From NCBI GenBank assembly GCA_009859145.1, contig VRVR01000011.1:377047-398540 (forward strand): a DNA stretch of 21,494 nucleotides, given 5' to 3'. The notes below the pieces were generated by a model, which was not told the origin of the DNA, searched no databases, and saw only the letters and a list, made by a program, of their open reading frames with translations. The position numbers and the translations under genes were made by a program. Below, piece by piece: positions 1 through 21,446 of this stretch. Numbering within the stretch: position 1 is the first letter of the stretch; every line of letters begins with the position of its first letter. Source of the DNA: Andalucia godoyi And28 (taxonomy: Eukaryota > Protista > Jakobida).

Positions 1-148
<148 letters not shown>

Positions 149-472
149 CTCTTTTTTAAATTAATTTTTTTTCCTTTTCCTCCTTCTTCTTTCTCTCGCG
201 CCGGTAGCCGCTTTTCTGGCCCGTGCTGTTTGTACAGTCCCCTCCTCTTTGTAATCATTGTACATAGATAGCCCTAAGTGGACCGTCGCGCCTCCTTTGC
301 TTTACTTTTGTTTTTGTTTTTGTTGATACCTTCTTCCCGTTGTTTCGTTTTCGCTCTCCCGGTGGTTTCCCTTTCGTTGGTCTTTCTGGGTTCATTGATC
401 AGTGATACGCCTGGAGACCTTGTTTGCACGAATCGCGAGAAAGTGGGAATAGCATAAGAAAAAGAAGGAAGA

Positions 473-2695
473 ATGGAGCGGATGGACGCAGCGGACCAGC
501 AGCATCGTCATCCTACGCTTTCCGTGCCTGTTGCAAAGCACGCATCGCCTTTGCTTTCCGAGGATTTCTCCACTGCCTTTCTGTCTGGCGGCGACGCAGG
601 GGGATCGTTTTTGAGTGATGCAAATGGAAACAGCGGGTCTGGAAATATGGGGGGTTCAAGAATTCTTTCCATGGGTCTTGACATCAGCAAGATCCGGTCG
701 TTTTCAGCGCCACCGTCGGCAGCTCTTGGGCCGGACAGCTCGGCCACGGGAATAGCAAATGTGCTTGGTGATGCGGATGACGACGACGAGGACTTCCGGT
801 GGGATCCCAACTATGCTGCGTACTATTATAAGGAACACAATCCGCGGCTGCCAAAACCTCTTGTCAATCCTGTGTTTACGTTTTCCTCGAGTACGCTTGC
901 GGGAATGCATGCTGCAGGCGGTGCGCAGACTTCAGATCAGAATGCCGGATCAGGACTCGACTCGTACCTTGCGTCGCGGTATGCCGCACAGGTATCTGCG
1001 TCGGCCGGAACAACCGGGTCTTCTTCTCTAGGTCCCTCTGCTGATGCTGGCGGAATGGGTCCCGGCTCTTCGATTTCCGGTGTCCCATCCTCGTCTTCGT
1101 CGCTGTCTGCTGGATCTGGATTGTCAACGTCTATGCACCAGCATCAGCACCAGCAGCAGTACCAACATCACCAACATCAGCAGCAGTACCAGCAGCAGCA
1201 GCAGCATCACCCGCAGCAACAGTCCTCTGGGCCGGTTGCGGTTCCGTCTGCACATGCCCCCGTTGCACACGTGCTCGTGCAATCACACGGTTCGCTCGCA
1301 GAGAACTTATCGCGCAAGGCCTCGCTTGTGGATATGATTCAGTCGGATTTCCCTCGCACGCCATCGCCCATGGTCCCCGGGGGTGTTCAGGGTGTGGTGG
1401 TTCCTCCGCGGCAAACGTCCCCTGCAAGCAACGGACAGTTGCGGCCGACGACGTCACCTGTTCATCAGTTGCCGCAATCGCAGCAGCAGCAGCTGCCACA
1501 GACACAGGCGCATCACGCACAGGCGCAACACCAGCAGCAGCAACACATTCCTCATGTTATTACAACTGGATATCATCCGCAGCAGCATCCACAACATCAG
1601 GCCCAACTGTATCCGCCGATGCAGCAACAGTTTCCTGCCTATCCGGGTGCGCAGAGCCATCAGACAGGTGGCGCGTATCCGTATGCTCAGCCTGGTATCA
1701 TTGCATCTTCCACTGTGCAGCAACAGCAGCAGCAGCAGCAGTGGATGGTTGGACCTCGAGGTGCTTCTGTTCCTAATGCACAAGGCTATCCATATCCCCA
1801 AGGATATTCAAAGTTCCCCCAATATCAATATCCACACGGAATGCCTCCTCCGATGCCTCAGCAGAACCACCAGCAAACGCATCAGCAACCCTCGCACCGT
1901 GCATATCACCATACGCCGTATCCTTCGCATCAGCAGCCCCAGTCTCCGCAATCTCATCTCCAACAAGTGCAACATGCTCAACATTCGCAGTACGATTCGC
2001 AGAGCACCGATGCAATGAGTATGGCAACAGCGGGTCTTAATGGAATGTCGTTGAACGGCCGAGGACCATCGGCGCGAGTGGGATCGAAGTATGCAGATAT
2101 GCAACAACAACAGCATCACCAACACCACCCCCATCACCAGCAGCAGCAGATGGAGACTTTCGGATCCGGCTCTTCTGGATCGATTCCAGGGCTTGGTGCT
2201 CCGGTTCCACACATGTCTGCTGTCTACAATGGACAAGGGTATCCGCTGCAATCTTCCGATCCGCATCAGCATGCTGCCCATCCCCAACATGGTAGCCAGA
2301 TTTCTCAGCACCTTCCTGCACAGCACCTTCCTTCAGTTGGAATGCACTCACAATCAGCTGGGCAGGCTGCTGCGAGCCACTCCGCATCCGTTCCGCGCGT
2401 TCCATCGCCCGGAGACGGCAGCATGAGCAGCGGCAACAGCTCAGGAATGCAAGTTGGTGGCTCTCACGTCCGCGCGGATTCCAACAGCCAACACCACCAT
2501 GGCGGTGCTGCCCTCGGAAATGGAAGCGGAAACAGTCATTCGCATGGACATCACGGCCACTCGAATGGACACAGCCATAGCTCCAGCCACAGTCATAGTA
2601 ATAGTCAAGGCCAAGGCCAAGGTCACGGCCACGGCCACAATCACGGTCATGGTCATGGTCATGGTCATGGAAGCGGCAACAACAGCCACAGCAAT

Positions 2696-2730
<35 letters not shown>

Positions 2731-3874
2731 TGGTACTGGAAATGGATCAAGCGGAGGAAACAATAATTCTGCCAACAGTGCCGGAAACAGTGCTTCCCGT
2801 TCTTCCGTGCTGGAAGATTTCCGACATGCCCGCAAGCGCAACTATGAACTTTCCGACATTGTTGGGCATGTTGTTGAGTTTTCTCGGGACCAGCACGGTT
2901 CCCGATTTATTCAGCAAAAACTGGAAACTGCGACCCCCGCTGAGAAAGAGAAGGTGTTCAAGGAAATTTTGCCGTCTGCACGCATCTTAATGACGGATGT
3001 TTTTGGAAATTACGTCATTCAGAAGCTTCTCGAGTATGGGTTGCCGGAACATCGCCATTCGCTCTTCGAGACGCTTCGCGGACACATTTTGGAGCTAACG
3101 CTTCAGATGTACGGCTGCCGAGTTGTGCAGAAGGCCCTGGAGTGCGTTGACGAACCAGGTCACCAGTCGATTCTTGCCGAGCTGCGAGGACCGGGGGTCA
3201 TTGCGCGATGTGTCAAGGACCAGAATGGCAACCATGTCATTCAGAAATGCATTGAGCGCGTCAATCACCCGCTGACACAGTGCATAGTGGATTCCTTCCA
3301 TGGACATGTGGTTGCTTTTTCTCGCCACGCATATGGCTGCCGAGTCGTGCAGCGCATCTTGGAGCACGGAAGCCCACAACAACGGGCTGGCTTGTTGAGT
3401 GAGGTGATACCCGCTGCAATGCATTTAGCTCAGGACCAGTACGGCAATTACGTCGTTCAGCATGTTTTGGAACATGGCTCTCAAGAAGAGCGATCCGCGA
3501 TCGTTGTTCGCATCGTGCTTCCAGAATGCTTCTTGGGTTGTGCGACACACAAATTTGCCTCCAATGTGGTAGAAAAATGTTATGCACACGGTTCTCCAAG
3601 CGATCGCAGCCATATGCTGGATGTTATTCTCGAGCACCGCCGTGTTCAACTCTCCGACGATGCTCCGCAGAACACAATCATGGCCAGCGGAATTTTGTTT
3701 GCCATGATGAAGGATCAGTTTGCCAACTATGTTGTGCAGAAGATGCTGGATGCCAGCACGGATCATGAACAAGGCCGCCTTGTAGATGCCATGCGTCCCT
3801 TGCTGACTACTCTACGCAAATTCCCTTACGCCAAGCACATTATTTCGCGTTTGGAAAAACTGGGTAAGATCTAG
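473..3874 (+). CDS. PUM: Pumilio-family (PUF) RNA-binding protein, 1133 aa; long Q/H/S/N-rich disordered N-terminus and C-terminal PUM-HD (about 2801-3871)
   Basis: Eight PUF repeats with canonical recognition motifs SRFIQ, NYVIQ, CRVVQ, NHVIQ, CRVVQ, NYVVQ, SNVVE, NYVVQ; also [13 protein letters not shown] and [10 protein letters not shown]. Single uninterrupted ORF, TAG stop. Confidence 0.96.
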
Positions 3875-4412
3875 TCGCTGTCGATGACCTAACTCCTCGT
3901 GGGTTCTCTGCTCTCTTCGCTGGTGGCTTTTCTATTTTTGTATCCTTTTCCTTTTGTGTCTTATGTTTCGTGTTTTTTCTTTTTCTGTATGTTTTCGGAT
4001 TCTGTTCTCTCTGCGTTCCCCGTTTGTTTTATACCATTATGTACCGTTCAGTTACAGATTCTTCTTTTTTTATGTGTGTCATTCTGCAATTCAAAAAACC
4101 CGCAAAAAAAACATAGCAAGTAAATAAATAATGAAAATCATCTTAGGTGAATTACCTTTGTGTGGAGCCAAAATTTGGACGTACAGTATGCTACCCGTAT
4201 CCCATATTCCTGCTTTTTGTCGGTTGTTACTGGCGTGCTTTGCGTCGTCACGCATCATTTTCGCTTTTCCCACCACACAGCGCATCACATCAGACAACCC
4301 TCGTTGGCGCCGAGACCACTAGAGAGAGAGAGAGGGTTGGCCGGCATGTCGTTTTTCGTCATTTTTTAATTTTATTTCTGTTCGTTCAAACAAATCGATC
4401 ACGCACAACACT

Positions 4413-4436
4413 CACACACACACACACACACACACA
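4413..4436. repeat. (CA)12 microsatellite in the PUF/UGPase convergent intergenic region
   Basis: Direct reading of the sequence. Confidence 0.9.
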
Positions 4437-4493
4437 CCCTCTTACGAAACAGACGCAAGATACAGGAGACAAACAGGATGAAAGGAAAACGCC

Positions 4494-4508
4494 GGGGGGG
4501 GGGGGGGG
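4494..4508. repeat. G15 homopolymer (poly-C on the UGPase sense strand, just 3' of its stop)
   Basis: Fifteen consecutive G at 4494-4508, followed by AGGGGAGG. Confidence 0.9.
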
Positions 4509-4544
4509 AGGGGAGGAACCGAAGGGAATCCAACCTTCTCTCCC

Positions 4545-6062
4545 TCAGTGTTCGAGAATACGCAGCGTTCCAGTGACGATCTTGTTGTCGAGAATGGCAC
4601 CGTCCGGAATATCGAGATGCTCGCCATCGTTGGCAATGATGATGACAGTCCCTCGCAAGACCACATTCTTTCCAAAAATGACGTCTCCCGACACAGTGAG
4701 CGACTCGAGTTCGATCATGTCCGGGATGCTCTTGAATCGCGACAGATACTGGTCGACCTTTCTAAAGTAGTGACCAAGACGGATCAGCGGCACAGTCGGG
4801 GCACCCATTTTCGAGATGCGTTCAGGGTTAAGAACCAGCGATCCCTTTTCGATCCTATACAAGTTACTCTGTACCACAAGCAAATCTGCAGTCGACTTGA
4901 CTGGCAAGAACCGCGAGCGGGGGACGGAGATTCCAATTGATTTCGTGCCGAACGACCGAATAGCAGCGCCGGATGCTTGCTCGAGCTGAATCACCGCAGT
5001 GCCGTTCGCAAGTGCCTTGGGGTTCACGATGATGTCCATTTCGAGCGAGCCGGACTTGATTGCCTCGCCCATCGCCTGCAATGAAATCCACAAGTTGTTC
5101 GTGTTGAACACTCTAAACTTTGTAATGGACTTGAACTCGTCCACGTACTGCGACGGCACCTGCGCGATTTCCAGGAGCCTGATAGACCCGTCAGTCTTGG
5201 ACGTGACAAGGGTGCCTCCCTTCACATCGGCTCTCGTCTTTGGCGTGACTTCCATGCAAAATGATGCGCCAGTTTTCACAATGTGCGACATGATGCGAGC
5301 ATCCACGGTAGCGCCCAAGTTGTCCGAGTTCGAGATGAAGAGATGCGTCTTTCCAGCATGCAAAAGTTCCTTGAAAAGATCCGAATTATAAAACGAGTCG
5401 TAGACATCGCCATGACCAGGGGGATACCACTTGTCCTTTTCGTCTTCCTGCTCCTTGCCCGCAGGAACCGACGTGTACCATCGAAGCGAGGCAGGCTGCA
5501 GCGTGTCCTTCATGATTCTCGGGACGGCCTTTTGTTCAAACGTGCGGATATCCACGCGTCCCGAGTACCGATTCACGATCTTGAGCGTTGCCTCGTGTGT
5601 GGAGAACGAGTCCATCAGCACGAGCGGGATTGACACACCGTACTGCTGGTTCAGCGACTCGATTTGGCGCACGATGAGGTCCAAAAACGTCATGTTTCTC
5701 GCCACCTCAATCGTCGACTTTGGACCTGAGCAGCCCATCGTGGTCCCAAGGCCTCCGTTCAGTTTCAGCACCACAAGACGTGACAAGAGAGCCTCGGTTT
5801 CCTGACGAGACGGTGCATTTTCAAGAACTTCATAGTCCATAAGACGCGGATCCTGGCCAGGTACAAGCGGATCAATCGAGTCCCATTCGATGGTATCGTT
5901 TTTCTGCGAAATAAACTTCTCAAACAGCTTCTGGTAGCTCTGCAGGTCCTTTTCCGCCTTTTTCCGCTCTGAAGCAGGCACAGTCTCCAGCAATTCCTCG
6001 CACAGATGCTCGAAAATGCCCATTGGAGTCCGTGTGTACGACGAAAGATCAACTTCCGACAT
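4545..6062 (-). CDS. UGP: UTP--glucose-1-phosphate uridylyltransferase (UDP-glucose pyrophosphorylase), about 505 aa. Probable start ATG 6062 (MSEVDL), alternative ATG 6086; the ORF-track extension to 6239 looks non-coding
   Basis: Signature motifs LKLNGGLGTTMGCSGPKS, WYPPGHGD, SNSDNLGA, KTRADVKGG, FNTNNLW, VPRSRFLPVK, and a C-terminal beta-helix region (LTVSGDVIFGKNVVLRGTVII). Confidence 0.96.
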   Translation of the reverse strand: MSEVDLSSYTRTPMGIFEHLCEELLETVPASERKKAEKDLQSYQKLFEKFISQKNDTIEWDSIDPLVPGQDPRLMDYEVLENAPSRQETEALLSRLVVLKLNGGLGTTMGCSGPKSTIEVARNMTFLDLIVRQIESLNQQYGVSIPLVLMDSFSTHEATLKIVNRYSGRVDIRTFEQKAVPRIMKDTLQPASLRWYTSVPAGKEQEDEKDKWYPPGHGDVYDSFYNSDLFKELLHAGKTHLFISNSDNLGATVDARIMSHIVKTGASFCMEVTPKTRADVKGGTLVTSKTDGSIRLLEIAQVPSQYVDEFKSITKFRVFNTNNLWISLQAMGEAIKSGSLEMDIIVNPKALANGTAVIQLEQASGAAIRSFGTKSIGISVPRSRFLPVKSTADLLVVQSNLYRIEKGSLVLNPERISKMGAPTVPLIRLGHYFRKVDQYLSRFKSIPDMIELESLTVSGDVIFGKNVVLRGTVIIIANDGEHLDIPDGAILDNKIVTGTLRILEH

Positions 6063-6475
6063 GGCTCGGATAGGCGCGCGCTCCATTCTCAGCAGTCGTA
6101 GGCAGTCAGAGGACAACGGACGATGAAGACAATCTACACTGCGTATGCACTTCCAAAAAATAGAAATAAAGAACAATAAAGAAGAAGAAGAGTTATCATA
6201 AGAAACATAATAACTGCAAAAATCACAAAGGACTTGCACGACGGACGAGGGACTTGAACAGGCAAAAACTTGAAGCTAGCTACGGTCGTTAGGCGCGCCG
6301 CTGTCCCGTCTTGCACGTTTCCCAACGATTCATTGATCAAAAATATTTTTATAACAATAAAAATGATGGCCAGCAAGACGAGAGCTTTCTTCTGAACGCA
6401 ACAAGATGCACTGAGCACAGTGTTTTTCTTCTTAACCATTGCATGTACTTGGATAGATAATTTGGATATTTTTGG

Positions 6476-6562: not shown

Positions 6563-6642
6563 AGAATAGTTTCGTTGTTTTTACAATCAATATTGGTATT
6601 GGTGTTGCTTATTTATAGTTGAACATACATCATAATAGCAGC

Positions 6643-8844
6643 ATGGCTGCGTCGAGTAGTGGGAATGCTGGGCTAGGAGGAGTGCCATCGACTCCGCTTT
6701 CGCTGTCTTCCGTACCGCTTTTAGCACCTGCACCGCAGCGGATGTCTTCACCGAGTTTTGTGAAGCCGCGGAATTCCTCCTCATCAAGCAGTGGTAGTAG
6801 CAGTAATGGTGGTGGATATGGGCTGTTGCATCGACGAAACATTCGGCCGAGTTTAGTTTCGTTTATTGTATCGTTTGAAAAGAAGGCACTGAGGCAGAAG
6901 GCGACGAAGAATCTGCTTATTTATATTCCTTTTCTGGTTCTGGTGTTTTTCTACGTGTTGGGCTCGCGATCTTTCGAGCAGGCGTTTTTCGCGCGCGATA
7001 ATCTTGAAGAAGTGATCATTCGTGAGCCGTGGTTCAATCTTCCTGCGCAGAATGTCTGGGATACGTTTGCAGACATTTCGAGCTTTGAGGACTGGTTCGA
7101 CTGGGCGACGCAGCCGCTTGTTACGGAGTTGTGGCCGGTTTCGTCGGTCCGGTACAACGTTCCGATTGGCGCAGTGCGATTGCGCCAGTTTCGGGTGTCC
7201 ACTTCGGACTGCAGTATCATCCCCGAGTACAATCCAAGCGCAAGTAACCCTTACTTTGATCCTGACTGCTATCCCGAGGCATCCGATGCAACTCTCATGA
7301 AGGGCGGCGGACGCATTTCGGGTTACCAGGACTGCGCCGAGGCTCCTGCAACGCCGATTTGGGGTCAGTCGAATATTGTGTATCCTTGTGGAGGCTACAT
7401 CGTGGACATTTCGCTGCCCAATACGACGTACGCGGACGCACTGGCTGTGTTTCAGCAGCTGAAGCAGGGACTTTGGCTGGACCAGCACACTGCCGGCGTC
7501 GTCGTGGAGTTCTTCACATACAACCCAAACGTTGATGTGTTCATCTCCAACAAGTATTTTGTCGAGTATCACTTCACCGGTGCTGTGATTCCGCAGGCGA
7601 TTTTTAGACCGTTCAAGCTGAAGTTGGCGTGGTTCGTTTCGCCGTGGGAGACCACTGTGCTCATGCTTCAGATCGTCTTTGTGCTGTACACATTCTACTA
7701 CCTCGTCGACTGGGTTCTGCGACTCGTGCATGCGATGCGTTTTGCACGGTCCAAGCTGGAATTCTTTACGTTTTGGAACATTTATGACTCTCTGTTCTTT
7801 CTCTTTTTCCTCAGTTCGTTTATCTCTCGCGCGGTCGTCATCGGGCGTATATACGCCTCATCGTTCAACATCAATGGAAGCTCTTATCCAGATCTCGACG
7901 AGATTGTCAACAATTACGTCATCAATGCGCAACTTGATGGACTGCTTGCGGTGCTGTGCTTTCTGCGAACGTTTCAGTTTTTGCGACTCAATGATCGTCT
8001 GAATCTGCTGGGTAGGACGCTTTCCGAAGCTGTGGGAGATCTCGTAGGATTCCTAGTCATGTTTGTGATTGTGTTTTTGGGGTTTGCATCGATGGCATTC
8101 ATCGTCTATGGCCCCGAGTTGGACGAATACCGAACGTATGCGCGGTCCATCTCCGCCTGCTTCTTCATTCTGCTCGGCGACTCGGACTACGAGTCACTGC
8201 TTCATGTGCATCGCATCCTCACTCCATTCTTTTACTTTGGTTTTATGCTACTCGTTTTCTTTGTGCTCTTCAACGTGTTTCTTGCCATCGTCAATGATTC
8301 GTACCAGAAAGCGACGGAGTCGTCCTCGTCACAATCCGTGGGAACCCAACTTCTCAAGGCATTCCGACGATGGAAGGAAAGTGTTTTAGCGTGGTGGCAT
8401 CGAAAACGTCGTGGTTCTTCTTCTTCCGATGGCGATTCCGGTATGTTTCATTCAGCAGTTCGTCCGTTTCCCAAAGGACGGCTCTCGAAGGTTGATCTTG
8501 CGCTTCGATTGCGGACGTATTTTTTACCCCATTATGACGCATCCATAGGCGACCAGAGGGTTCTACATGAAGGACCGCCTATTTTTCGATCCGAGCTTGC
8601 TCTGCGCGTGAAATTCGCTTTGTCGGGAGACGCAACGCAGCAGCAACTCGAGGAGATTCTTCGATTGTTCGACGAGTATGACGCGACGTATTCATCCTCG
8701 GAGCAGGATGCTTTGGCACAGACTCCGCAGTCGCCGCAAGACTCCTCCCCTTTGCTGACATCCGAGTCAAAACGCGTTTCAGACCTCTTGGGTCAGATTG
8801 AAGAGCGGCTTTCCTTTCTCCAATCCAAGATCAAGACTTCATAA
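6643..8844 (+). CDS. PKD2: Polycystin-2-like (PKD2/TRPP-type) cation channel, about 733 aa from the first ATG (6643)
   Basis: TM1 followed by a TOP/polycystin domain (GAVRLRQFRV, YPCGGY, WLDQHTAGVVVEFFTYNPN), further hydrophobic helices, pore motif ILLGD (8167-8181) and an S6-like segment FVLFNVFLAIVNDSY. C-terminal coiled-coil-like tail. Confidence 0.88.
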   Translation: MAASSSGNAGLGGVPSTPLSLSSVPLLAPAPQRMSSPSFVKPRNSSSSSSGSSSNGGGYGLLHRRNIRPSLVSFIVSFEKKALRQKATKNLLIYIPFLVLVFFYVLGSRSFEQAFFARDNLEEVIIREPWFNLPAQNVWDTFADISSFEDWFDWATQPLVTELWPVSSVRYNVPIGAVRLRQFRVSTSDCSIIPEYNPSASNPYFDPDCYPEASDATLMKGGGRISGYQDCAEAPATPIWGQSNIVYPCGGYIVDISLPNTTYADALAVFQQLKQGLWLDQHTAGVVVEFFTYNPNVDVFISNKYFVEYHFTGAVIPQAIFRPFKLKLAWFVSPWETTVLMLQIVFVLYTFYYLVDWVLRLVHAMRFARSKLEFFTFWNIYDSLFFLFFLSSFISRAVVIGRIYASSFNINGSSYPDLDEIVNNYVINAQLDGLLAVLCFLRTFQFLRLNDRLNLLGRTLSEAVGDLVGFLVMFVIVFLGFASMAFIVYGPELDEYRTYARSISACFFILLGDSDYESLLHVHRILTPFFYFGFMLLVFFVLFNVFLAIVNDSYQKATESSSSQSVGTQLLKAFRRWKESVLAWWHRKRRGSSSSDGDSGMFHSAVRPFPKGRLSKVDLALRLRTYFLPHYDASIGDQRVLHEGPPIFRSELALRVKFALSGDATQQQLEEILRLFDEYDATYSSSEQDALAQTPQSPQDSSPLLTSESKRVSDLLGQIEERLSFLQSKIKTS

Positions 8845-9651: not shown

Positions 9652-10317
<666 letters not shown>

Positions 10318-10722
10318 TTCTTAGTTCTCTGAAAAGCGGACTGTATGAAAAGAGAGCGAGGAAGAATCAAAACAAGTCGAAAAGAAAGGAGAAACCAGCA
10401 GGCGGAAGTATAAAAGACAAGGACAAGGACAAAAGACGCGAGAGAAGAAGGAGAAAGGAATATATATTGGGTTTTTGTTATTCGGTCCTTTTTTTCGAGT
10501 TGAGAGTTTTGACAGACAGAACTGGTGGGACTCTCCCCACAACAGGAGCTCATAGTTTGCCGATCTAAATGTCAGTCCCCGACAGTCCTGACATTGTGCC
10601 CTCAATTGATTCTATTCCCCACGCGCCGTTATTGCATTTGTCTTTTGTTTCGAAATGTCTTTTCTCATTTCTTTGTGTTTCTACGTTTCGTTGGCAGATT
10701 TGGGAGTTGATTTCGTTTGATT

Positions 10723-10776
10723 GTCCTTGTCCTTGTCCTTGTCCTTGTCCTTGTCCTTGTCCTTGTCCTTGTCCTT
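10723..10776 (+). repeat. (GTCCTT)9 hexamer repeat upstream of the Rab-like gene; explains the spurious VLVLVL N-terminus in the ORF track
   Basis: Nine perfect copies. Confidence 0.93.
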
Positions 10777-10812: not shown

Positions 10813-13071
10813 ATGTCTGGCGTGATTAGGATCTGTATAGTAGGGGACTCGAGGGTTGGAAAGTCCAGTTTGGTCGCTGAGTTTGCGGGTCGCGGATTAG
10901 CGGGGTCGGCCTACAGCGAAACGCGGGGCTTGGTGACAGAACAGTTTTCGCTGGGGTCGGGTATTATGGCCGAGATGGTGGATCATCGGTCAAACATTCC
11001 CGCTGCAGAAAAGCAGTCATTTTACAAGTCTGCGGATTTTGTGCTTCTCTTGTATGACATCACCGTTCATTCGTCGTTCGAGTCTGCGACGTCGAGGCTC
11101 TACAGGGAGGCACATCACTATGCTCCCGATGCAATTGTCATGCTTATCGGATGCAAAATGGATATGAATCTTGAACGTGCCGTCACGATCAAGGAAGCCG
11201 AGACCTTTGCGACGTCCGCAGGCCTGTTCTTCATGGAAGTGTCGTGCAAAGACCACACGAATATCGAACTTACGTTGAAGATTATGCGGATTCGAGCTCA
11301 GCATATCCTCAGAAGAAGATCAATCTCAATCTCCTCTTCTGCGGCTGCACAGTCTCCCTCTGCATCACAGGCGGCTTCTGGAGTCCAAACACCAAGAAAA
11401 ATGGATGTGGCAACATCGACTCCGCCACGAGATTCCGCTTCTCAGAGTTCCATTCCTGCACAAAGACCACCTGCATTCAATAGTGGAGGTGTCGTCAATC
11501 TTAAAACGCTGGGAGCGGGCAGCGGTGAAGACGATATCGCTTCTGCAGATGCTTTTCGAGCGATTTCGTTTGGAGATTCTGGAGACCCACTCAATACCAG
11601 CGTCGGCAGCAGCAGCAACAACAATAACAATAACAATAGCAGTGGTAGCGGCAGCAGCAGTCGGAGCAGTAGTAGTGGTATCAACAACAACAACAACAAC
11701 AACGGCAACAATAACACTGGAGGAAATGCAGAGCATCTTGCGGCGCTGCAAGATCGATACAATAGGCTTCGGGCAGAGCTTCATCAGCTTACGTCGCCGC
11801 CGCCTTCCGGCTCAGGTTCTCAGTCCCAACGCGAATCGTATTATTCTCCGAATATCTCTGCCCTCCCGAGACCTGCTTCGGTGATCTCGTCTTCTGATAA
11901 TGCGTTATCGACGTTTTCGCCGCCCCATGTGAAGGATTTCACGAGAACCGCGGATGGATCGCTGGTGCCGATTGTCGAGACTGCACTGAGCAGAGAAGGG
12001 GTCACACCGAACATGATGCTTACGTCCACCCAGGTCCTTGCAGAGCTACCCGTGCACTCGTCAGTGTACGAACGAAATAGAAATGTGCAGACGTCACCGT
12101 CGCGTATCATGAGAAATCTTGCCCATCCCGTGAAGGAGCCGCAGCTGTTCATCGACATCAACATTGGCGATGGGCGTGTTGGCCAGATTGGAGTCCGCGA
12201 GGGTGACAATGCGTACACGCTTGCAGAGACGTTTGTGCGGGCCTTCCGATTGGAGAAGTCGTTTGTGCGGAAACTGGCTGCGCTGATCCAAACGCGGGTG
12301 CAAGAGTTCAATTTGGAGCAAAAGAGGCAGCTGGGAAGACCGATGTCCGCTCGTGCGGAAACGAAGAAGCAGCCGGTCGATGTGAAGCCGTTCAAGTTTC
12401 ACACCGATGACCGCTTGCAAAATCGCTCCGAGGTGCTTTTGCGGCTGCATGTTGATGTAGGCAAGGGCAAGTTTGGCACGATCGCTGTGCGAAAGGGCGA
12501 CGATCCAACAATGCTTGCCCGGAATTTTTCGCAGGCATTTGCGATTCGTGGTGAGCGGGTGGCCGAGATTGAAAGCAAGATCCGCGAGCATATTTTGAAC
12601 TACTTTATTCGAGAGGCATCGGACCCGAATTCTAATCCAGCTCAGGGTCCGCCGCAGGTGATTGAAGCCACTGTTTCATTGTCGTCTCTCCTTGGCGAAT
12701 CCACGTCTTCAGCGTCGTCTGGTTATCATCATCCGAGCGCCAGCCCAGGCTACAACGTTGGAGCATCCGGATCTGCATCTGGGGCAGGTTTGGGATCTGG
12801 ACAGGCTTCACGAGCCACGAGTCGTCACGTTGGGCCATCCTCGCAGTCCGCGAAACTGAGCAACGTTGCGAGCCATACGCTGTTCTACCTCGATGTGGAT
12901 ATCGGCGACGGGCGCACCGGTCGGTTGAAAGTAACTGACCGTGATGCACCCGCGGATCTTGCGCGCTCCTTTGGCGTCCAACATCATCTCGATGAGCGAG
13001 CCATTCACAAGCTGGATTCGATCCTGACTCGTAATATGCGCGAGTATGTAAAGGCGTCTTCGAAGTCGTAA
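10813..13071 (+). CDS. Large atypical Rab/Ras-like GTPase, 752 aa: N-terminal small-GTPase domain, low-complexity linker with short coiled coil, and three ~55-aa repeats; no C-terminal prenylation Cys
   Basis: P-loop GDSRVGKS (10843-10866), ADFVLLLYDIT, G4-like GCKMD, G5-like FMEVSCK. Internal repeats at about 12142-12309, 12433-12603 and 12877-13047. First ATG is at 10813; an upstream exon is not excluded. Confidence 0.85.
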   Translation: MSGVIRICIVGDSRVGKSSLVAEFAGRGLAGSAYSETRGLVTEQFSLGSGIMAEMVDHRSNIPAAEKQSFYKSADFVLLLYDITVHSSFESATSRLYREAHHYAPDAIVMLIGCKMDMNLERAVTIKEAETFATSAGLFFMEVSCKDHTNIELTLKIMRIRAQHILRRRSISISSSAAAQSPSASQAASGVQTPRKMDVATSTPPRDSASQSSIPAQRPPAFNSGGVVNLKTLGAGSGEDDIASADAFRAISFGDSGDPLNTSVGSSSNNNNNNNSSGSGSSSRSSSSGINNNNNNNGNNNTGGNAEHLAALQDRYNRLRAELHQLTSPPPSGSGSQSQRESYYSPNISALPRPASVISSSDNALSTFSPPHVKDFTRTADGSLVPIVETALSREGVTPNMMLTSTQVLAELPVHSSVYERNRNVQTSPSRIMRNLAHPVKEPQLFIDINIGDGRVGQIGVREGDNAYTLAETFVRAFRLEKSFVRKLAALIQTRVQEFNLEQKRQLGRPMSARAETKKQPVDVKPFKFHTDDRLQNRSEVLLRLHVDVGKGKFGTIAVRKGDDPTMLARNFSQAFAIRGERVAEIESKIREHILNYFIREASDPNSNPAQGPPQVIEATVSLSSLLGESTSSASSGYHHPSASPGYNVGASGSASGAGLGSGQASRATSRHVGPSSQSAKLSNVASHTLFYLDVDIGDGRTGRLKVTDRDAPADLARSFGVQHHLDERAIHKLDSILTRNMREYVKASSKS

Positions 13072-13194: not shown

Positions 13195-14058
13195 TCATGG
13201 AAGAGCCAACCAATTGCGAATAATCGGGAACCAGTCGTCTGGGATCGGAGCGTCCCAGATATCAATCTCGCGCACGCCGGCCTGTTGAATTGCGTCAAAC
13301 CGGAATTGCATGTCCTCCACGGTAAACGGCTTGTTTGTGTTGGGGTTGACGGTGATGAGTCCCATTCCGAGCCTGTCGACTCCGAATGCCTCTACTGCTG
13401 CGTTGAAGTACTGCAGCCACAAATCGTTGCTTCCAATGTAGCCATCCATGGAGAACACCTTGTCAAGACGCGACGTGTTCAGCACGTTGTATGCCAACAT
13501 GGGAGCCCAGTGCGCAATGTCCACAGTGACCAGCTTACCGACCTTGTGCATTGCATCCGAAAACGTGTTGAGAAAATCGGCGTACAGATACGCATCGGAA
13601 ACCAGAGAGCCATCCGGCTCAATGTCCAGGTTGATTCCCGCATACCCATTCTCCAAGCACTCGCGGACAGCAGCCTCAATGAACGGAGTCGGGTTTGCAA
13701 ACAGCTTGCGCGCCCACTCGACCGTGTCGTTGCGACGGTGCGGCGGTGCATCCATGTACGTCGACACCATTGGGAACGTCTGGATTCCCCATTTTTCCAG
13801 CGTAGGGTTCACCACAGTCAGGTTATTTTTAACAAGGGTGCCGTCCTCTCCGAGATTGTAGCACTCAAATGCAGCGTGGTTCACAACGTCCAGATTCGCT
13901 GCAATCTGCGCCAAATCCGAGGATATGTCTTCTCCAGTCCGTTCGAGCCCCATCCAAGGCATCACAATCTTCTTGCTTGCTGCATTGCACAACACCACTC
14001 CACATGATGCCACCACCAGCACACTCAGCACAAACGACGCTCTCGCAAGCCCCGCCAT
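13195..14058 (-). CDS. Secreted glycoside hydrolase family 18 (chitinase/chitobiase-like) protein, 287 aa, with signal peptide
   Basis: Hydrophobic leader MAGLARASFVLSVLVVASCGVVLCNA from ATG 14058. Catalytic-strand motif GYAGINLDIEP (NxDxE at 13632-13618). C-terminal ...REIDIW resembles the last GH18 barrel strand. Confidence 0.72.
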   Translation of the reverse strand: MAGLARASFVLSVLVVASCGVVLCNAASKKIVMPWMGLERTGEDISSDLAQIAANLDVVNHAAFECYNLGEDGTLVKNNLTVVNPTLEKWGIQTFPMVSTYMDAPPHRRNDTVEWARKLFANPTPFIEAAVRECLENGYAGINLDIEPDGSLVSDAYLYADFLNTFSDAMHKVGKLVTVDIAHWAPMLAYNVLNTSRLDKVFSMDGYIGSNDLWLQYFNAAVEAFGVDRLGMGLITVNPNTNKPFTVEDMQFRFDAIQQAGVREIDIWDAPIPDDWFPIIRNWLALP

Positions 14059-14451
14059 CTGAAAACGCTCCTGCTCGGTATCGCTTGCGTTTCCTTGTTC
14101 ACGCGCGCGAACAATGGAATCGGGAGATTGGTCTTTCCATTCTTCGGGTCTTTTCTTTTTTTGGGATGTCGGAAAACCGTCATTGCACGTTAGCAATTGC
14201 ACCGTCATCTTTTTTTTTCACCCTTGGCTTTTTGCTCACTTGACTTGAATCGAATTTTCAAATCCTCTATTTGTTTCTCCTTTGGTCCTTTCTTCTTCTG
14301 AGCTTTTATTTTCTTCGTAATTTTTTCCCAACTTTTTTTTTTGAAAAAATATTATTATTATTATTAAATCATCAGTTTGAATATTGATACAATTAATCCA
14401 TCCGCTTTCTCGTATTCATTCTTTTAAACTGATTCCTATAACGGAAAGAAA

Positions 14452-15370
14452 AGTATGTATTTTGTCTCCTTGCTGCTAAGCCGTGTTCTGTATCCCGACG
14501 ACGACTAACGAGTTTTTTTTTTTTTGTTGTTGTTGTTGCTGTTGTTTTTGCTTCCTCATTTGGTTTAATGGTGCAGTGTTCCGAAACTCGTATGACACGG
14601 ATGTGACCTTGTGGTCTCCCCAAGGCCGTCTTTTTCAGATCGAGTATGCGATGGAGGCGGTGAAGCAAGGCAGTGCCGCAGTTGGTCTCAAGTCTTCTTC
14701 GTATGTTGTTCTGGCGTCGTTGAAGCGAGCGCCGCATGCGGAACTGTCTTCGTATCAAAAGAAGATTTTTACCGTGGACACGCACATGGGAATTGCAATT
14801 GCAGGTCTTACCTCGGATGCTCGAGTGCTGTCTCGGTTTATGCGGACTGAGTGTCTCAATCACAAATACGTGTTTGATGCACCGATGCCGGTGGGCCGTC
14901 TTGTGCTTAAGGTTGCCGACAAGTCGCAGACATGCACACAAGAGTCCTCAAAGCGCCCGTTTGGCGTTGGCTTGCTTGTGGCCGGATTTGATGAGACAGG
15001 AACTCATTTGTACCAGACGTGCCCCTCTGGAAACTACTGGGATTACAAGGCAGTGGCCATTGGCGCAAGATCGCAGTCTGCAAAGACGTACTTGGAAAAG
15101 AACTTTGATTCGTTTGCCTCTCTCGGAAAAGAGGAACTCGTTCGACATGCTCTTCTTGCATTAAGAGAAACTACGGGAGACAATGTGGAGCTCACCACGA
15201 AGAATACGGCAGTGTCGATTGTCGGTGTTGATACTGCGTTCACGGTGTTTGAAGACGAAGGCGTGGAGCCTTTTATCCAGCTCATTTCTGCCGAACAGGC
15301 ACAAGCACAGGCACAGGCACAGGCGCAGCAAGCTTCTGCACCACAACCATCGCCCATGGACACTGAGTGA
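14452..15370 (+). CDS. PSMA1: 20S proteasome subunit alpha-6 (alpha type-1), 264 aa; start codon assembled from A14452 and TG 14577-14578
   Basis: FRNSYDTDVTLWSPQGRLFQIEYAMEAVKQG, RPFGVGLLVAGFD and AIGARSQSAKTYLE are diagnostic for alpha-6. No in-frame ATG exists without splicing. Confidence 0.96.
14453..14576 (+). other. Spliceosomal intron, 124 nt, GTATGT...TGCAG, splitting the start codon; branch-point-like GACTAAC at 14503-14509
   Basis: Removal yields A|TG TTC CGA AAC = MFRN, the canonical alpha-6 N-terminus. Confidence 0.88.
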
Positions 15371-15735: not shown

Positions 15736-18676
15736 ATGGAGGAATTTGCAAGGATAGAAACACAAGAGACAATTACTGCTATTGCAATCGCAAGTATGTG
15801 TTATGTCGTTATCTCGCTGGCTTTTTTAAAATATTCACTCCGACTGTGATTTGGTTGTTTGTGATGGCTTGACCAGATTCACTTATTACTATTACTATTC
15901 GTATCACTATGTCTGTTATTTGTTTTTGTTTTTGTTTTTGTTTTTGTTTTTGTTTTGGTTCGTTGTCGTTGTCGTTGTCATTGTCGTTGCCGTTTGTTTG
16001 TGTGCTCAACAATGGGAAATAGAAGAGACATTGGTGGTTGGAACGTCGGAAGGAAATGTGACGTTGCATCGGATGACGGTGAGCACGTCTCCGGACGGAG
16101 GAGTGACAGAGGAGTTTTTTGAGGACTGGACAAAGCAGATTGCTTCGAAGAAACATATCGACGAAATCCGCATTGCCGAAGACGATGGAAACGTGTATGT
16201 TCTGTGCGATTCTTCTCTTTCGGCTCTCGAGATTTACTCGGGGGAGCCGGTCTGGAAGTCCAAAGATGCAAAGCACGCCGCATGCTTCGATGTTTGCGAA
16301 TCGTTCATTGCGTTCAGCTCGAAAAAGAGGATTTTGCTGCAGGATGCGTATGAAAACTACGGCACAAGAGCAGAAGTGTTTTCCCCAGAAGCGTGCTCGT
16401 GCCTTGCTCTGTTTTCGACCGATGTAGCCGTGGTTGGGTTCAAGAAGGAGTATGCACTCGTGACCTTTTCGACGCAGCAGCTGCAGTCACTGGCGCCGAT
16501 TCCAGAGTCCGTGTCGGGCCCGCTTTGCGTGGTGATTCCCGAAACCGGAGAGGCTCTTCTACGATTGGAAGATTTAGGACAGATTGTTTGTGTGGAGGAG
16601 GGTTCCAAGAAACTGATGGTGACCAGATCTGCGTTTCGATGGACAGAGGTTCCCCGAGGCGTTGCGGTATCGTATCCATTTATCATGGCCCTCGAGTCTC
16701 GGTGCATCGAGATACATTCCATGTTTGACAGCAATCTCAATTTGATCGATACGGTCCCTTTCAAAGACGGTGTTGCAATCGCAGCGTCTCTGAACGGCGA
16801 GCACGTGGCGGTGGCATCTACTCGGAAGGTGGTTATTTACAAGCCGACTGCACCCGAAAAAATCATCAAGAAGCTCATTCAAGAACGCAGAATCGATGAG
16901 GCTTTCGAAGTGTTTGAAAAGACACAAAAGGACATGGATCCGGAGGAGAAGAAAAAGGTGCTATCGGACATGTCGCGAGATGGAGGCATCCAGTACCTTG
17001 TTGCTGCGAATTTCTCAAAGGCGTTTGAAACGTTCAAAAAGTCCTTGATGGACCCGCGGGATGCAATCGCGTTTTTCAAAGATCTTGTGTATTCGTCCAG
17101 AATCCCCTTCGTCCCGTACAAACCTCTTGACATTGACAATATCATTCGTGCCATTGCACGAAGTACGGTTACTTCCAGCTCTTCAGCGGTCTCAGGCTCA
17201 GGTTCAGGAATATCTTCTTCCGCGTCCTCAAATTCCTTATCTGCATCGTCAGCGGGGTCCTCATCTGCTTCCGGCCCTACCGGAAGTGCGTCAAACGCAA
17301 ACTCGAGTCCATCGGTGCAAGCCCAAATTTCGCAACTGCGAGAAGCGGCACGAGTTGAGTTGCGCAAATATCTGTTTCATTGTCGGAGTCGCCAGGGAGT
17401 CAACTGGCCACCAGAATCGTACGAAGCTGTTGATTTTGCGCTTGTCAAGGTGTTGCTGGAGTCGGCCGCCGCGAACGCAAATGACATGCTCTTGTCACTT
17501 CTTCGTGATAAGAACTCCTGCCCTCAAGAGTGCGAAAACTTGCTGCGGAATGCAAACAAGATGCTCGCTCTCGGCTTCTTGCAAAAATCCCGCGGTCGTC
17601 TGCGCGATGCTCTCCAGATATGGAAGGACATGAGTGATGTTGATGCGGCCCAGGCGGCGATCGATTCCCTCGTGACGGAGAACCAGCTGCCGTTCATCTG
17701 GACCCATGGAAAGTGGGTGTTTGACAAGTTTCCGCTGCGTGCTGTCAAGATTTTTGCACTGAATCCAGCACACGCAAAGAATGCAGGCGAAATTCTTGAC
17801 CGACTGCGTGTCTATGGGTCCGAGGTGGTGATTGCTTTCCTCGAGTCGCTTGTGAAGGACGAGGCACGTCAAGATGCCTTTATTTTCCACACCGAGCTGG
17901 CGGTGCGGTACATTGAGATTGCGCAGAATTTGAAGGTGCAACTGGGACCGGCACTGCAAGACCGAGATAGCAAGTCTCGTATCGAGGCGGGCTCCGAACC
18001 CGGCATGCTCGGGGAGACGCGAACAAAATTGCTGTTTCATTTGCAGAATTCGAAGATGTACGATGCGGGCTCCGTTCTAAGCGCTCTGAAAGGGACTGAT
18101 CTTTGGGAAGAGCTGGTTGTCGTGTATACAAAGGCACAGATGTGGACTGAAGCGTTGCGCGGGATGGTCTACCATTTGGAGAACTTTGAAGGCGCCGAGA
18201 AGTTCTGTGTCGATCGAAAGATCCCGCTGACTGCGTTGCTCGAAGTTGTGGTGCATGAGGAAGCCCGTGTATTTTCATTGCTGGATCGCCATGCCACACG
18301 CATGGATCCCTGCACTGTGCTTAGGATTCTCCCGGACACTCTTCCGATCAACAAGATGAAGGACTATCTGTCGCGAGTCGTTGCCCACGCCAACGCTGTG
18401 AAGAACGACCGCGTTGTCGTGAAGAACCTCGCGAAAGGATCGAGAATGGAAATTGAGTACACGCGAATGTGTGCTGTGAGTCGGCGTGCAGTCATTGGTG
18501 AAAACAAAATGTGTGGCGTGTGCAAGAAACGCATCAATGAGAACCACTTTGTCGCCGTCTACCCTAACCTACGTGTCGTCCACTATTCATGCCACAAGAA
18601 TGTCCACATTGACCCGGTGGACGGCAGAGATTTCCGCACTGACTCCGTTCGATTCCAAGATTTGGATTTACCTTGA
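15736..18676 (+). CDS. Vps39/TGFBRAP1(Vps3)-family HOPS/CORVET subunit, about 903 aa; exons 15736-15793 and 16023-18676
   Basis: CNH-like N-terminus (spliced ITAIAIAK-ETLVVGTSEG), central helical/CHCR-like region (FHTELAVRYI, LWEELVVVY) and C-terminal Zn-finger-like CGVCKKRI...YPNLRVVHYSC. Which paralog it is cannot be resolved by eye. Confidence 0.85.
15794..16022 (+). other. Spliceosomal intron, 229 nt, phase 1, GTATGT...ATAG, filled with microsatellites including (TTTTTG)n
   Basis: The donor matches the other two introns and the phase is compatible with the acceptor at 16021-16022. It replaces the implausible YYYY/FLFL/VVVV N-terminus of the ORF-track protein. Confidence 0.8.
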
Positions 18677-20174: not shown

Positions 20175-20687
20175 CGCTTATATCAGCGTCGTCGTCGTCG
20201 CCGTTGTTGTTGTTGTTCAAACAAAGACCAGGATATCGCGCATTTTTTCCCCCCCTTGTCCTTTACCATTGTCCCGGAACCTGCTGAGGAAAGATGTTTG
20301 AATGTCGACAGCTGTCGAATGCTGAACTCAAGCGTGCAAGAAGATGCACGAAACCCCAGAACGCGGACGGAATCCAAAAAAGGGAATAATGTGTTCAACA
20401 GCACCCTTTTTTTGTCTGGTTTCAGCACTTTTTTGAGCGTTTTGGTGCTTTTCCAGGTTTCGGTGTAAAAATAAACTCTTGCTTGCGCTCCGTTCCTATT
20501 TATTGATGTGGGCGTTGCTATTTTTCATTTTCTGTGAACCATTTTTTCCCCTCCTGATTATGTCTTCTTCTTTTTTTCCCTTCTCTTGGTTCGTCAGCAC
20601 TTTTTATTGCCATTTTGCAACAAATTAGCAGTAGCGCCATTTGGGCAAGAAAGTAGAAGAGAAGGGGAAAAGAACGGCAAACAGAAA

Positions 20688-21446
20688 ATGTCTGGTGGTT
20701 GTCCATTCGTTCACATTGAAGAGCCTCGTTTGGAAACAGACCTCGGTTATCGGGCGCAGTATATCTGCAAGTTTGTTGAATTCGATGCAGAAGATGTAAA
20801 GACCATGAACGCGCTTGCTCCTGTACTTGCGCCTCTTGTGCCGACCGTTGTGGACGCAGTATACACTAAGCTGTTTTCGTTTGATGTAACGAAGTCAGTG
20901 TTTCTGAAGCGCAACGAGGGGTTCCAGGGACGACTAGACGCCGATCTTGCGCATCTTTCTCAGAATTCCGAGCAGATCAAGTTCCGCAAGGACATGCTTT
21001 CCAAGTATCTTGTGCGTGTCGTGACCGGAAACTACGACACGGCGATGATCAGCTACCTGGACTGGGTCGGCAAGATCCACACTGACAAGGCAGGTGCAAA
21101 AACCATTAATGTCGATTATATCCACTGCGGCCTGCTCATGGGTTATGTGGAAAATGTTCTGCTCGGCGCCGTTCTCGGAGCGGGACTGGATGCGGAGACC
21201 ACCAAGCGCGCCGTGATCGCCATCAACAAGGTCCTGTGGATTCAGAATGATCTCTTTGTTCGCCACTATCTCCCCACTGCAGAGGAAAAGGCGATTCTCG
21301 CACATTGTCGCTCGAACTCTTCGTCTTCCTCCTCCTCGTGTTGCCCTGTTTCAAAGTCTTGCTGTGCGTTCAGCATGCAGAACATCTCGGCTCTCGTCGG
21401 TGGCATCGCCCTCGGCCTTGGTCTTGCGAAGGCGTTCTCCCGTTAA
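20688..21446 (+). CDS. Protoglobin/sensor-type single-domain globin, 252 aa, with Cys-rich linker and C-terminal hydrophobic tail
   Basis: From ATG 20688. Resembles fungal-type sensor globins as I recall them (LETDLGYRAQYICKFVEF, VDAVYTKLFSFDVT, RKDMLSKYL, YLDWVGKIH, VDYIH, KVLWIQNDLF). Putative proximal His131 at 21078-21080. Confidence 0.8.
   Translation: MSGGCPFVHIEEPRLETDLGYRAQYICKFVEFDAEDVKTMNALAPVLAPLVPTVVDAVYTKLFSFDVTKSVFLKRNEGFQGRLDADLAHLSQNSEQIKFRKDMLSKYLVRVVTGNYDTAMISYLDWVGKIHTDKAGAKTINVDYIHCGLLMGYVENVLLGAVLGAGLDAETTKRAVIAINKVLWIQNDLFVRHYLPTAEEKAILAHCRSNSSSSSSSCCPVSKSCCAFSMQNISALVGGIALGLGLAKAFSR

Follow-up and report, generated by a model that had tools for sequence, protein, structure and literature searches.

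What kind of protein arises when a GTPase domain is joined to repeats that resemble, by eye, a ubiquitin-binding domain, and what might such a protein bind? The question is raised by a gene of the jakobid Andalucia godoyi And28, located in a stretch of 21,494 nucleotides (GenBank assembly GCA_009859145.1, contig VRVR01000011.1, positions 377,047 to 398,540 of the forward strand), which as a whole is called the window below and from whose first letter all positions are counted. An earlier note on this DNA, made from the letters alone, had proposed that three tandem repeats of about 55 amino acids (aa), similar to the PFU domain of PLAA/Doa1, are fused here to a Rab-like GTPase. We consider it highly probable that the gene product is a non-prenylated Rab-like GTPase with three modules of the type of the PFU C-terminal sub-domain (PFUC) and that it belongs to a conserved family of proteins from free-living protists. 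The best explanation as a whole, in which this anatomy is combined with a role as multivalent adaptor for a ligand of the ubiquitin type, has in our estimate an even chance of being right.

Three repeats and a Rab-like GTPase domain in one reading frame

When 12142-13047 of the plus strand is translated, exactly the three segments are obtained that had been quoted as repeats, and this region lies inside the open reading frame (ORF) 10813-13071. Their fusion to a Rab-like GTPase was borne out: in the same ORF the Pfam family Ras matches aa 7-155 (E = 2.5e-21, 76 bits), with a weaker match of the Pfam family Roc (E = 9.6e-8). GTPase and repeats are also found in one ORF in L001 (contig 1-5010 of JGI metagenome 3300042934, from an uncultured relative), which encodes a full-length syntenic orthologue (691 bits), and also in proteins derived from the transcriptomes of Gefionella, Stygiella and Diphylleia. 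In L001 the gene is continuous over 740 codons and begins a few residues ahead of the first strand of the G domain; a prokaryote-style gene caller had shortened it to the C-terminal 481 aa. The biological start in Andalucia is almost certainly the ATG at 10813 (MSGVIRICIVGD...). That the mechanical ORF list begins further upstream, at TTG 10717, is due solely to a perfect (TTGTCC)9 microsatellite at 10721-10776, which happens to be open in frame and is crossed by the first 32 codons. The microsatellite is located directly 5' of the start codon.

The closest relatives of the G domain among PDB sequences are EhRabX3 (E = 1.5e-21), followed by RabA1a, Rab25, Rab11A, Rab2 and Rab14. All of the 60 PDB sequence matches listed are Rab, Rab-like or annotated as likely Rab-family proteins and none is a Ran, Rho or Ras protein. 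Since the best relatives are Rabs, the label "Rab-like" is fair. The segment LLLYDIT in the G domain is one that we take to resemble the RabF5 motif. The protein is not a canonical Rab, as switch II is lost, the G4 and G5 motifs are variant and there is no Cys for prenylation. At the switch II position, with the sequence VDHRSN, both the glycine of DxxG (the one concerned with the gamma-phosphate) and the catalytic Gln are missing, and in the family alignment G3 is degenerate throughout (WDCGxx, WDVSPN or LDHRPN). The alpha-5 helix LTL.ILRIRA.H is conserved in the G domains of the family. The C terminus (...REYVKASSKS) is free of Cys, and a Cys within the last 10 residues is found in 0 of the 39 family sequences with a G domain; a terminal prenylation motif is therefore absent from these members.

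The three repeats (R1, R2 and R3) are related to each other far beyond what composition would give. Their pairwise Smith-Waterman scores are 69-86, compared with a mean of about 21-22 (standard deviation 4.2-4.3) for shuffled sequences (z = 11-16), and the observed values were reached in none of 2000 shuffles. With a family profile made from 98 diverse repeats exactly three copies are detected when the whole window is translated in all six frames. Of the earlier description as three tandem repeats of about 55 aa the number thus stands; the length does not, as each unit comprises about 64 aa (a hairpin plus two helices), nor does the strict tandem arrangement, as spacers of 34 aa (R1-R2) and 84 aa (R2-R3), predicted by AlphaFold to be disordered, are intercalated. 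Tandem Repeats Finder found no repeat at the DNA level over the repeat region, which fits an old and diverged triplication.

It could be argued that the resemblance of the repeats is due to chance or low complexity, or that the fusion is an artefact of assembly or ORF calling, considering the long Ser/Asn-rich tracts of low complexity and the microsatellite that adjoins the start codon. The z values of 11-16, the profile scores of 62-77 bits per repeat, the confident AlphaFold models described below and the recurrence of the architecture in L001 and in the transcriptomes of several phyla have already refuted this explanation, whose probability is practically nil.

Sequence and predicted fold of the repeats

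Pfam PFU (PF09070) gives a whole-sequence score of 30.9 bits (E = 3.3e-7), which is above the curated cutoff of 26.2 bits, and PF09070 is also listed in the precomputed database annotation of the protein. The single repeats score 22.4 bits (R1), 14.3 bits (R3) or not at all (R2), so that none reaches 26.2 bits alone. When the C-terminal region is compared with the sequences in the PDB, Doa1 comes first, and the alignment (VFDVDIEDGKPPLKLPINVSDNPYTAADNFLARYELPMSYRDQVVQLI) matches the pattern that had been recognized by eye. In searches of the PDB sequences with repeat profiles, the matches in a single stretch are to Snf5 (E = 7e-4 to 7e-3) and to Doa1 (E = 6e-3 to 8e-2). The TAL-effector proteins that top the PDB list of the 98-repeat profile (E down to 2e-12) are an artefact: matches of less than 4 bits to a helix of 16-18 aa (HGL.p.qV.aIA) are summed over 16-23 repeats.

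When aa 400-752 were modelled by AlphaFold with four orthologues as the basis, the repeats appeared as three separate units, in each of which a beta-hairpin is followed by two helices, the first short and the second long, with predicted local distance difference test (pLDDT) values of 80-93. The linkers have values below 50 and the predicted template modelling score is 0.27; therefore no fixed packing is predicted between the units. R1 modelled alone, on 11 repeats, reaches a pLDDT of 95. With this model as query for Foldseek (template modelling (TM) scores normalised to the query), the PFUC of human PLAA (2k89) is at rank 1 with a TM score of 0.64 and a root mean square deviation (rmsd) of 1.6 Å over 51 columns, and the PFU domain of yeast Doa1 (3pst, 3psp, 3l3f) is at ranks 2-4 with TM scores of 0.67-0.69, 24-25 % identity and a probability of 1.00. 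Taken together, these top four matches have a probability of 1.00, an rmsd of 1.6-2.0 Å and an identity of 18-25 %. Next in the list are the repeats of SMARCB1/Snf5 (TM 0.56-0.64), the autoinhibitory domain of WNK1, CCT1 of WNK2 and the CCT domains of OSR1/SPAK (TM 0.57-0.70), and the p97-binding VCPID of VCPIP1 (TM 0.49-0.52). The predicted structure thus led back to PFU domains and not to a different known fold, and with the Pfam score it upholds the resemblance claimed in the earlier note. Judged from sequence and predicted structure, the repeats are homologues of the PFU C-terminal sub-domain, within a wider beta-beta-alpha-alpha fold that includes the SNF5 repeats and the CCT/PF2-like domains.

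The relationship within this wider fold raises the possibility that the modules are units of the SNF5/SMARCB1 type, which would hold a helical domain in a stable partner as in a clamp (cf. the SWIRM domain of Swi3/SMARCC). The protein would then be a permanent part of a complex and would not read a modification. Among the PDB sequences matched in a single stretch, a yeast Snf5 repeat is the best for both repeat profiles (E = 0.0074 and 7e-4), the model with several repeats finds the same set of Foldseek matches with the two-repeat arrangement of BAF47/Snf5 on top, one relative in the family matches Pfam SNF5 (E = 6e-4), and a published modelling study, as cited in PMC7604603, links Rpt1 of SMARCB1 to PFU. 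The SNF5 repeats, however, pack together, whereas the units of the Andalucia protein are kept apart by disordered linkers of 34-84 aa and have no predicted mutual arrangement, and Pfam SNF5 (PF04855) does not match the Andalucia protein even at E <= 10. We therefore consider a clamp of this type very unlikely.

The linkers deserve attention of their own. The long one between the G domain and the repeat region, rich in Ser, Asn, Ala and Gly, lies outside the modelled region and is probably disordered, judging from its composition and low conservation. Within it a short segment that looks helix-like by eye (AEHLAALQDRYNRLRAELHQL) is conserved, in the form TLTALQDRYLRLKAELQSM, in homologue P0002. 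Two further short motifs stand out. The first, K.F.(E)T.DG..[IV]P[IV][IV]ET.L, is found about 50 aa upstream of R1; as a regular expression it matches 10 family members, including those of Naegleria and Gefionella, and its identity to L001 is 77 %. This motif might serve in docking or in regulation in cis. The second, [KQ]PFxFxT/SxxR (KPFKFHTDDR in Andalucia), is located just upstream of R2 and is present in about half of the family members with three repeats, among them heterolobosean, jakobid, malawimonad and stramenopile proteins. We take PFxFxTxxR to resemble the microtubule-binding motif of TPX2/FAM161. This identity is unsupported, as Pfam TPX2 gives no match and FAM161A_B matches only one homologue segment with E = 0.17; in the Pfam scan no family accounts for the motif.

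These motifs bear on another explanation, namely that the modules are readers of peptide motifs like the CCT (PF2-like) domains of WNK and OSR1. Their targets would be short linear motifs of partner proteins or, in cis, the conserved motifs in the protein's own linkers; in the latter case the protein would be an adaptor under autoinhibition until the G domain or a partner relieves it. Foldseek superimposes the repeat on the autoinhibitory domain of WNK1 (2lru) with a TM score of 0.70 and an rmsd of 2.2 Å over 56 columns, CCT1 of WNK2 (6elm) and the CCT domains of OSR1 and SPAK (7okw, 7o86, 2v3s) are found as well, and the conservation of two short motifs across distant lineages within otherwise unconserved linkers is a pattern typical of docking motifs. 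There is, however, no similarity to Pfam OSR1_C (PF12202) in the Andalucia protein even at E <= 10, so that the likeness to CCT is structural only; PFU and SNF5 rank above CCT both in the sequence and in the structure searches; and the conserved linker motifs are not RFxV-like. Binding of peptides in the manner of CCT domains is the main rival to a reader of ubiquitin, the SNF5-like clamp being the lesser one, and we consider it unlikely.

A family of protist proteins and the neighbourhood of the Andalucia gene

When 1.84 billion representative sequences were searched exhaustively by HMMER with the repeat profile, 1604 proteins were found at E <= 1e-3, 213 at E <= 1e-10 and 23 at E <= 1e-30. 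It should be noted that a word-indexed protein search with repeat profiles is insensitive: it returned 2 fragments with one profile and none with the 98-sequence profile. Architectures were counted in the best 152 representatives of the HMMER search plus the L001 ORF (n = 153). At least 39 proteins (39 of these 153 best sequences) have an N-terminal G domain; 27 of the 39 have exactly three repeats. The members with a G domain are 584-2029 aa long, and in most members the last repeat ends a few residues from the C terminus. In an independent Pfam scan of the 152 representatives, 55 have a PFU match and 38 a Ras match.

The survey of domain partners showed that the module is not confined to GTPases. 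NPL4, C2, EH and EF-hand domains were also seen beside it. For example, among P0053 (837 aa), P0079 (881 aa) and P0115 (1066 aa) one protein contains NPL4 and one three C2 domains, and one of these three has 7 stretches matched by the repeat profile and a Pfam PFU score of 114 bits. A paper from 2025 describes PFU as "unique to PLAA family proteins" (PMC12232612); the occurrence of the PFUC module in about 1600 representative proteins contradicts this.

Named members of the family come from a jakobid (Stygiella), from Heterolobosea (Naegleria gruberi XP_002683358, N. lovaniensis, Willaertia, Percolomonas), metamonads (Paratrimastix, Dysnectes, Aduncisulcus), a malawimonad (Gefionella), CRuMs (Diphylleia) and stramenopiles (Cafeteria, Hondaea and one marine (MMETSP) transcriptome). 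The label "taxon 87120" of MMETSP0961, which would be a basidiomycete, is unreliable, because the G domain of this protein aligns closest with that of the Hondaea member. No metazoan or amoebozoan is among the 30 family proteins whose source was looked up, and no animal, fungal or plant member was found among the inspected sequences. The closest named relatives of the Andalucia protein are those from Stygiella (349 bits) and Gefionella (300 bits).

The three repeats have kept their identity within the family. In 26 of 26 homologues the first repeat best matches R1, in 22 of 26 the second best matches R2, and in 13 of 26 the third best matches R3. The repeats are therefore orthologous by position, from which it follows that the triplication is ancient, predating the split of the lineages, and that the copies are not interchangeable. 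When the Andalucia protein is compared with four orthologues, the identities are 62-87 % for R1 (87/62/62/62), 50-78 % for R2, 42-71 % for the G domain, 38-54 % for R3 and 16-37 % for the long linker (aa 171-371). R1 is thus the most conserved part of the protein.

Has the family been described before? The earlier note knew of no described GTPase with three PFU-like modules. In the searchable literature we likewise found no publication that joins PFU with Rab-like or other Ras-superfamily GTPases or that cites accessions of the family, and the named homologues carry the labels hypothetical, predicted, "small GTPase like" or, automatically, "Rab-14". To this extent the claim holds. It does not hold for the databases, in which the architecture is a recurrent one that is already annotated automatically as Ras plus PFU. 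What is new is an uncharacterised, conserved combination of known domains.

Even this novelty would shrink if the proteins were the RabTitans, a group of large Rab-like proteins without C-terminal cysteines that is said to have been named by Elias et al. in 2012 and to be inferred as ancient and of unknown function. The GTPase family would then already have a name, and the novelty would be limited to the PFU-type modules at most. RabTitans have been described as distantly Rab-like, without C-terminal cysteines and present in N. gruberi, Branchiostoma and Dictyostelium (Kloepper et al., PMC3425129), and as absent from kinetoplastids and alveolates (PMC5399786, PMC5391186). The missing cysteines, the Pfam Ras score of 76 bits, the length of the members, the inclusion of N. 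gruberi XP_002683358 and the lack of a named member from kinetoplastids or alveolates agree with this, the likeness being judged from the published descriptions. RabTitans were, however, reported from a metazoan and an amoebozoan genus, and neither group is represented among the 30 members with known source. We regard the identity of the two groups as a tentative possibility.

The coordinates of the gene, its parts and its neighbours are given in Table 1. The neighbouring genes look like single uninterrupted ORFs, and therefore the genome seems intron-poor; the window is eukaryotic. Scans for tRNAs and Rfam families gave no match in the 21.5-kb window. An A-rich repeat, (AAAAAC)n, is located at 10171-10227. 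The 337-aa ORF downstream of the GTPase-PFU gene has no relative among PDB sequences and is conserved and syntenic in L001 (3140-3991, minus strand). The gene order in L001 is that of the window: the GTPase-PFU gene, the GH18-like ORF on the opposite strand and a gene on the plus strand at the contig end. By position, this last gene occupies the place of the window's proteasome alpha subunit. Protoglobins, to which an ORF near the end of the window belongs by its domain, are mostly archaeal and bacterial, whereas the genes around this ORF are eukaryotic.

Table 1. Features of the window, in the order of their positions
Feature	Position	Strand	Evidence or remark
Pumilio, 8 PUF repeats	473-3874		
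UDP-sugar pyrophosphorylase	4545-6239	-	
Polycystin-type cation channel	6619-8844		
GTPase-PFU gene, complete coding sequence	10813-13071	+	752 aa + stop (13069-13071), by translation
Rab-like GTPase domain, aa 1-170	10813-11322	+	Pfam Ras, Roc; PDB sequence matches
G1 P-loop GDSRVGKS, intact	10843-10866	+	Family alignment
G3/switch II position, VDHRSN instead of DTAGQE	10978-10995	+	Family alignment
G4 variant GCKMD (canonical NKxD)	11149-11163	+	Family alignment, [C/T/N]KxD conserved
G5 variant VSCK (canonical SAK)	11239-11250	+	Family alignment, FFMEVS[A/C]K conserved
Ser/Asn/Ala/Gly-rich linker, aa 171-371	11323-11925	+	S 46, N 24, A 22 of 202 residues
Short conserved segment in long linker	11728-11790	+	Helix-like by eye; outside modelled region
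Linear motif K.F.(E)T.DG..[IV]P[IV][IV]ET.L, aa 372-392	11926-11988	+	Regular expression match
Repeat R1, aa 442-505	12136-12327	+	Pfam PFU, AlphaFold, Foldseek
Profile match R1	12136-12324	+	77 bits
Motif KPFKFHTDDR, aa 525-534	12385-12414	+	Homologue comparison
Repeat R2, aa 540-603	12430-12621	+	Profile envelope; AlphaFold hairpin + two helices, pLDDT 81-85
Profile match R2	12430-12615	+	64 bits
Repeat R3, aa 688-752, at C terminus, without Cys	12874-13068	+	Pfam PFU; AlphaFold pLDDT 89-93
Profile match R3	12877-13056	+	62 bits
337-aa ORF, hydrophobic segment near N terminus	13195-14208	-	Weak Pfam GH18 match, E 0.017, profile positions 92-139
Proteasome alpha subunit	14483-15370		
Vps39	15851-18676		
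Protoglobin-domain ORF	20586-21446	+	Pfam E 7e-40

Proposed function and comparison with known systems

The protein is soluble, and its modules are independent of each other and strung on disordered linkers. It may act as an adaptor with several binding sites (multivalent). Guanine nucleotide is probably still bound by the G domain, since the P-loop, the G4 motif [C/T/N]KxD and the G5 motif S[A/C]K are kept. Because the DxxGQ of switch II is lost, hydrolysis of GTP would be slow or absent, and the domain is probably a docking unit that is locked in the GTP form or regulated by a partner. The three PFUC modules would each bind protein weakly and gain strength by avidity. By homology with the PFU domain of PLAA/Doa1 the likeliest candidates for their ligand are ubiquitin or ubiquitylated proteins, possibly in connection with Cdc48/p97 or with endosomal sorting. 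PFU binds mono-ubiquitin with a Kd of about 1 mM and also binds the SH3 domain of Hse1 (PMC4828692, PMC12232612); with such a low affinity, three copies would make functional sense. A further hint to the ligand is that a PFUC-like module is elsewhere joined to NPL4 and, in other proteins, to C2, EH or EF-hand domains.

Several points weigh against this reading. The PFU match spans only positions 59-111 of the 113 profile positions, which is the C-terminal half, and the same half-model coverage is seen in the relatives P0053 and P0077. The Foldseek E-values are all above 0.01, as is expected for a query of 66 aa. The residues conserved between the repeats (G11, G13, V20, A30, F33, L39, I51) look like core and turn positions and not like an obvious ligand surface. 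Nucleotide binding by a G domain with the variants CKMD and SCK is an assumption. And the PFUC fold serves different, non-ubiquitin partners in SNF5, WNK/OSR1 and VCPIP1. Ubiquitin as the ligand of the modules, which is proposed by homology, is for us possible rather than probable.

More far-reaching is the proposal of an ancient GTPase family, which may date back to the last common ancestor of eukaryotes, that would read ubiquitin or poly-ubiquitin by avidity via three non-redundant PFUC modules. A GTPase switch would thereby be coupled directly to ubiquitin-dependent sorting or to Cdc48-linked extraction, with PFU as a mobile module in well over 1000 representative proteins. In this full form it is rather improbable. 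The named taxa with the family are presumably all flagellates or have flagellate stages; a flagellar role of the protein, which the earlier note had also suggested, is pure speculation.

The significance of the family does not depend on the ligand alone. The PFU C-terminal sub-domain emerges as a free-standing, repeatable module that is most prominent in a Rab-like GTPase family distributed across eukaryotic supergroups. If the modules bind ubiquitin, the protein would be a direct fusion of a GTPase with a ubiquitin reader, of which we found none described in the searchable literature, and evolutionary cell biologists would have, in tractable protists, a new and ancient component of trafficking or quality control. 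If they do not, the family still adds to the links that unite PFU, the SNF5 repeats and the CCT domains in a single old fold for interactions.

Among known systems, EhRabX3 from Entamoeba (PDB 5c1s/5c1t) is comparable in its GTPase part, as in the PDB alignment the DxxG signature is missing from the C-terminal one of its G domains too. EhRabX3 is a protein with tandem G domains and, unlike the GTPase-PFU protein, has no PFU-type modules. The CCT/PF2-like domains of OSR1, SPAK and WNK, including the autoinhibitory domain of WNK1, have a similar core fold and are likewise modular units on a signalling enzyme, some of them acting as autoinhibitors in cis. CCT domains bind RFxV, and no such motif is conserved in the GTPase-PFU family. 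RPT1 and RPT2 of SNF5/SMARCB1 (INI1, BAF47) are beta-beta-alpha-alpha units that also occur more than once per protein; in contrast to the units on disordered linkers described here, they adjoin each other and bind a SWIRM domain in a chromatin remodeller. With the PFU domain of PLAA/Doa1 (Ufd3) the repeats have in common the signature h-x-h-D-h-x-x-G...h-x-V...GD-x-P...LA..F....L plus a long helix. The architecture is another one: in the Pfam scan the Andalucia protein matches Ras and PFU, without WD40 or PUL. PLAA/Doa1 carries one PFU between a WD40 propeller and PUL, whereas in the GTPase-PFU protein the PFUC module, corresponding to the C-terminal half only, is present three times and is fused to a GTPase.

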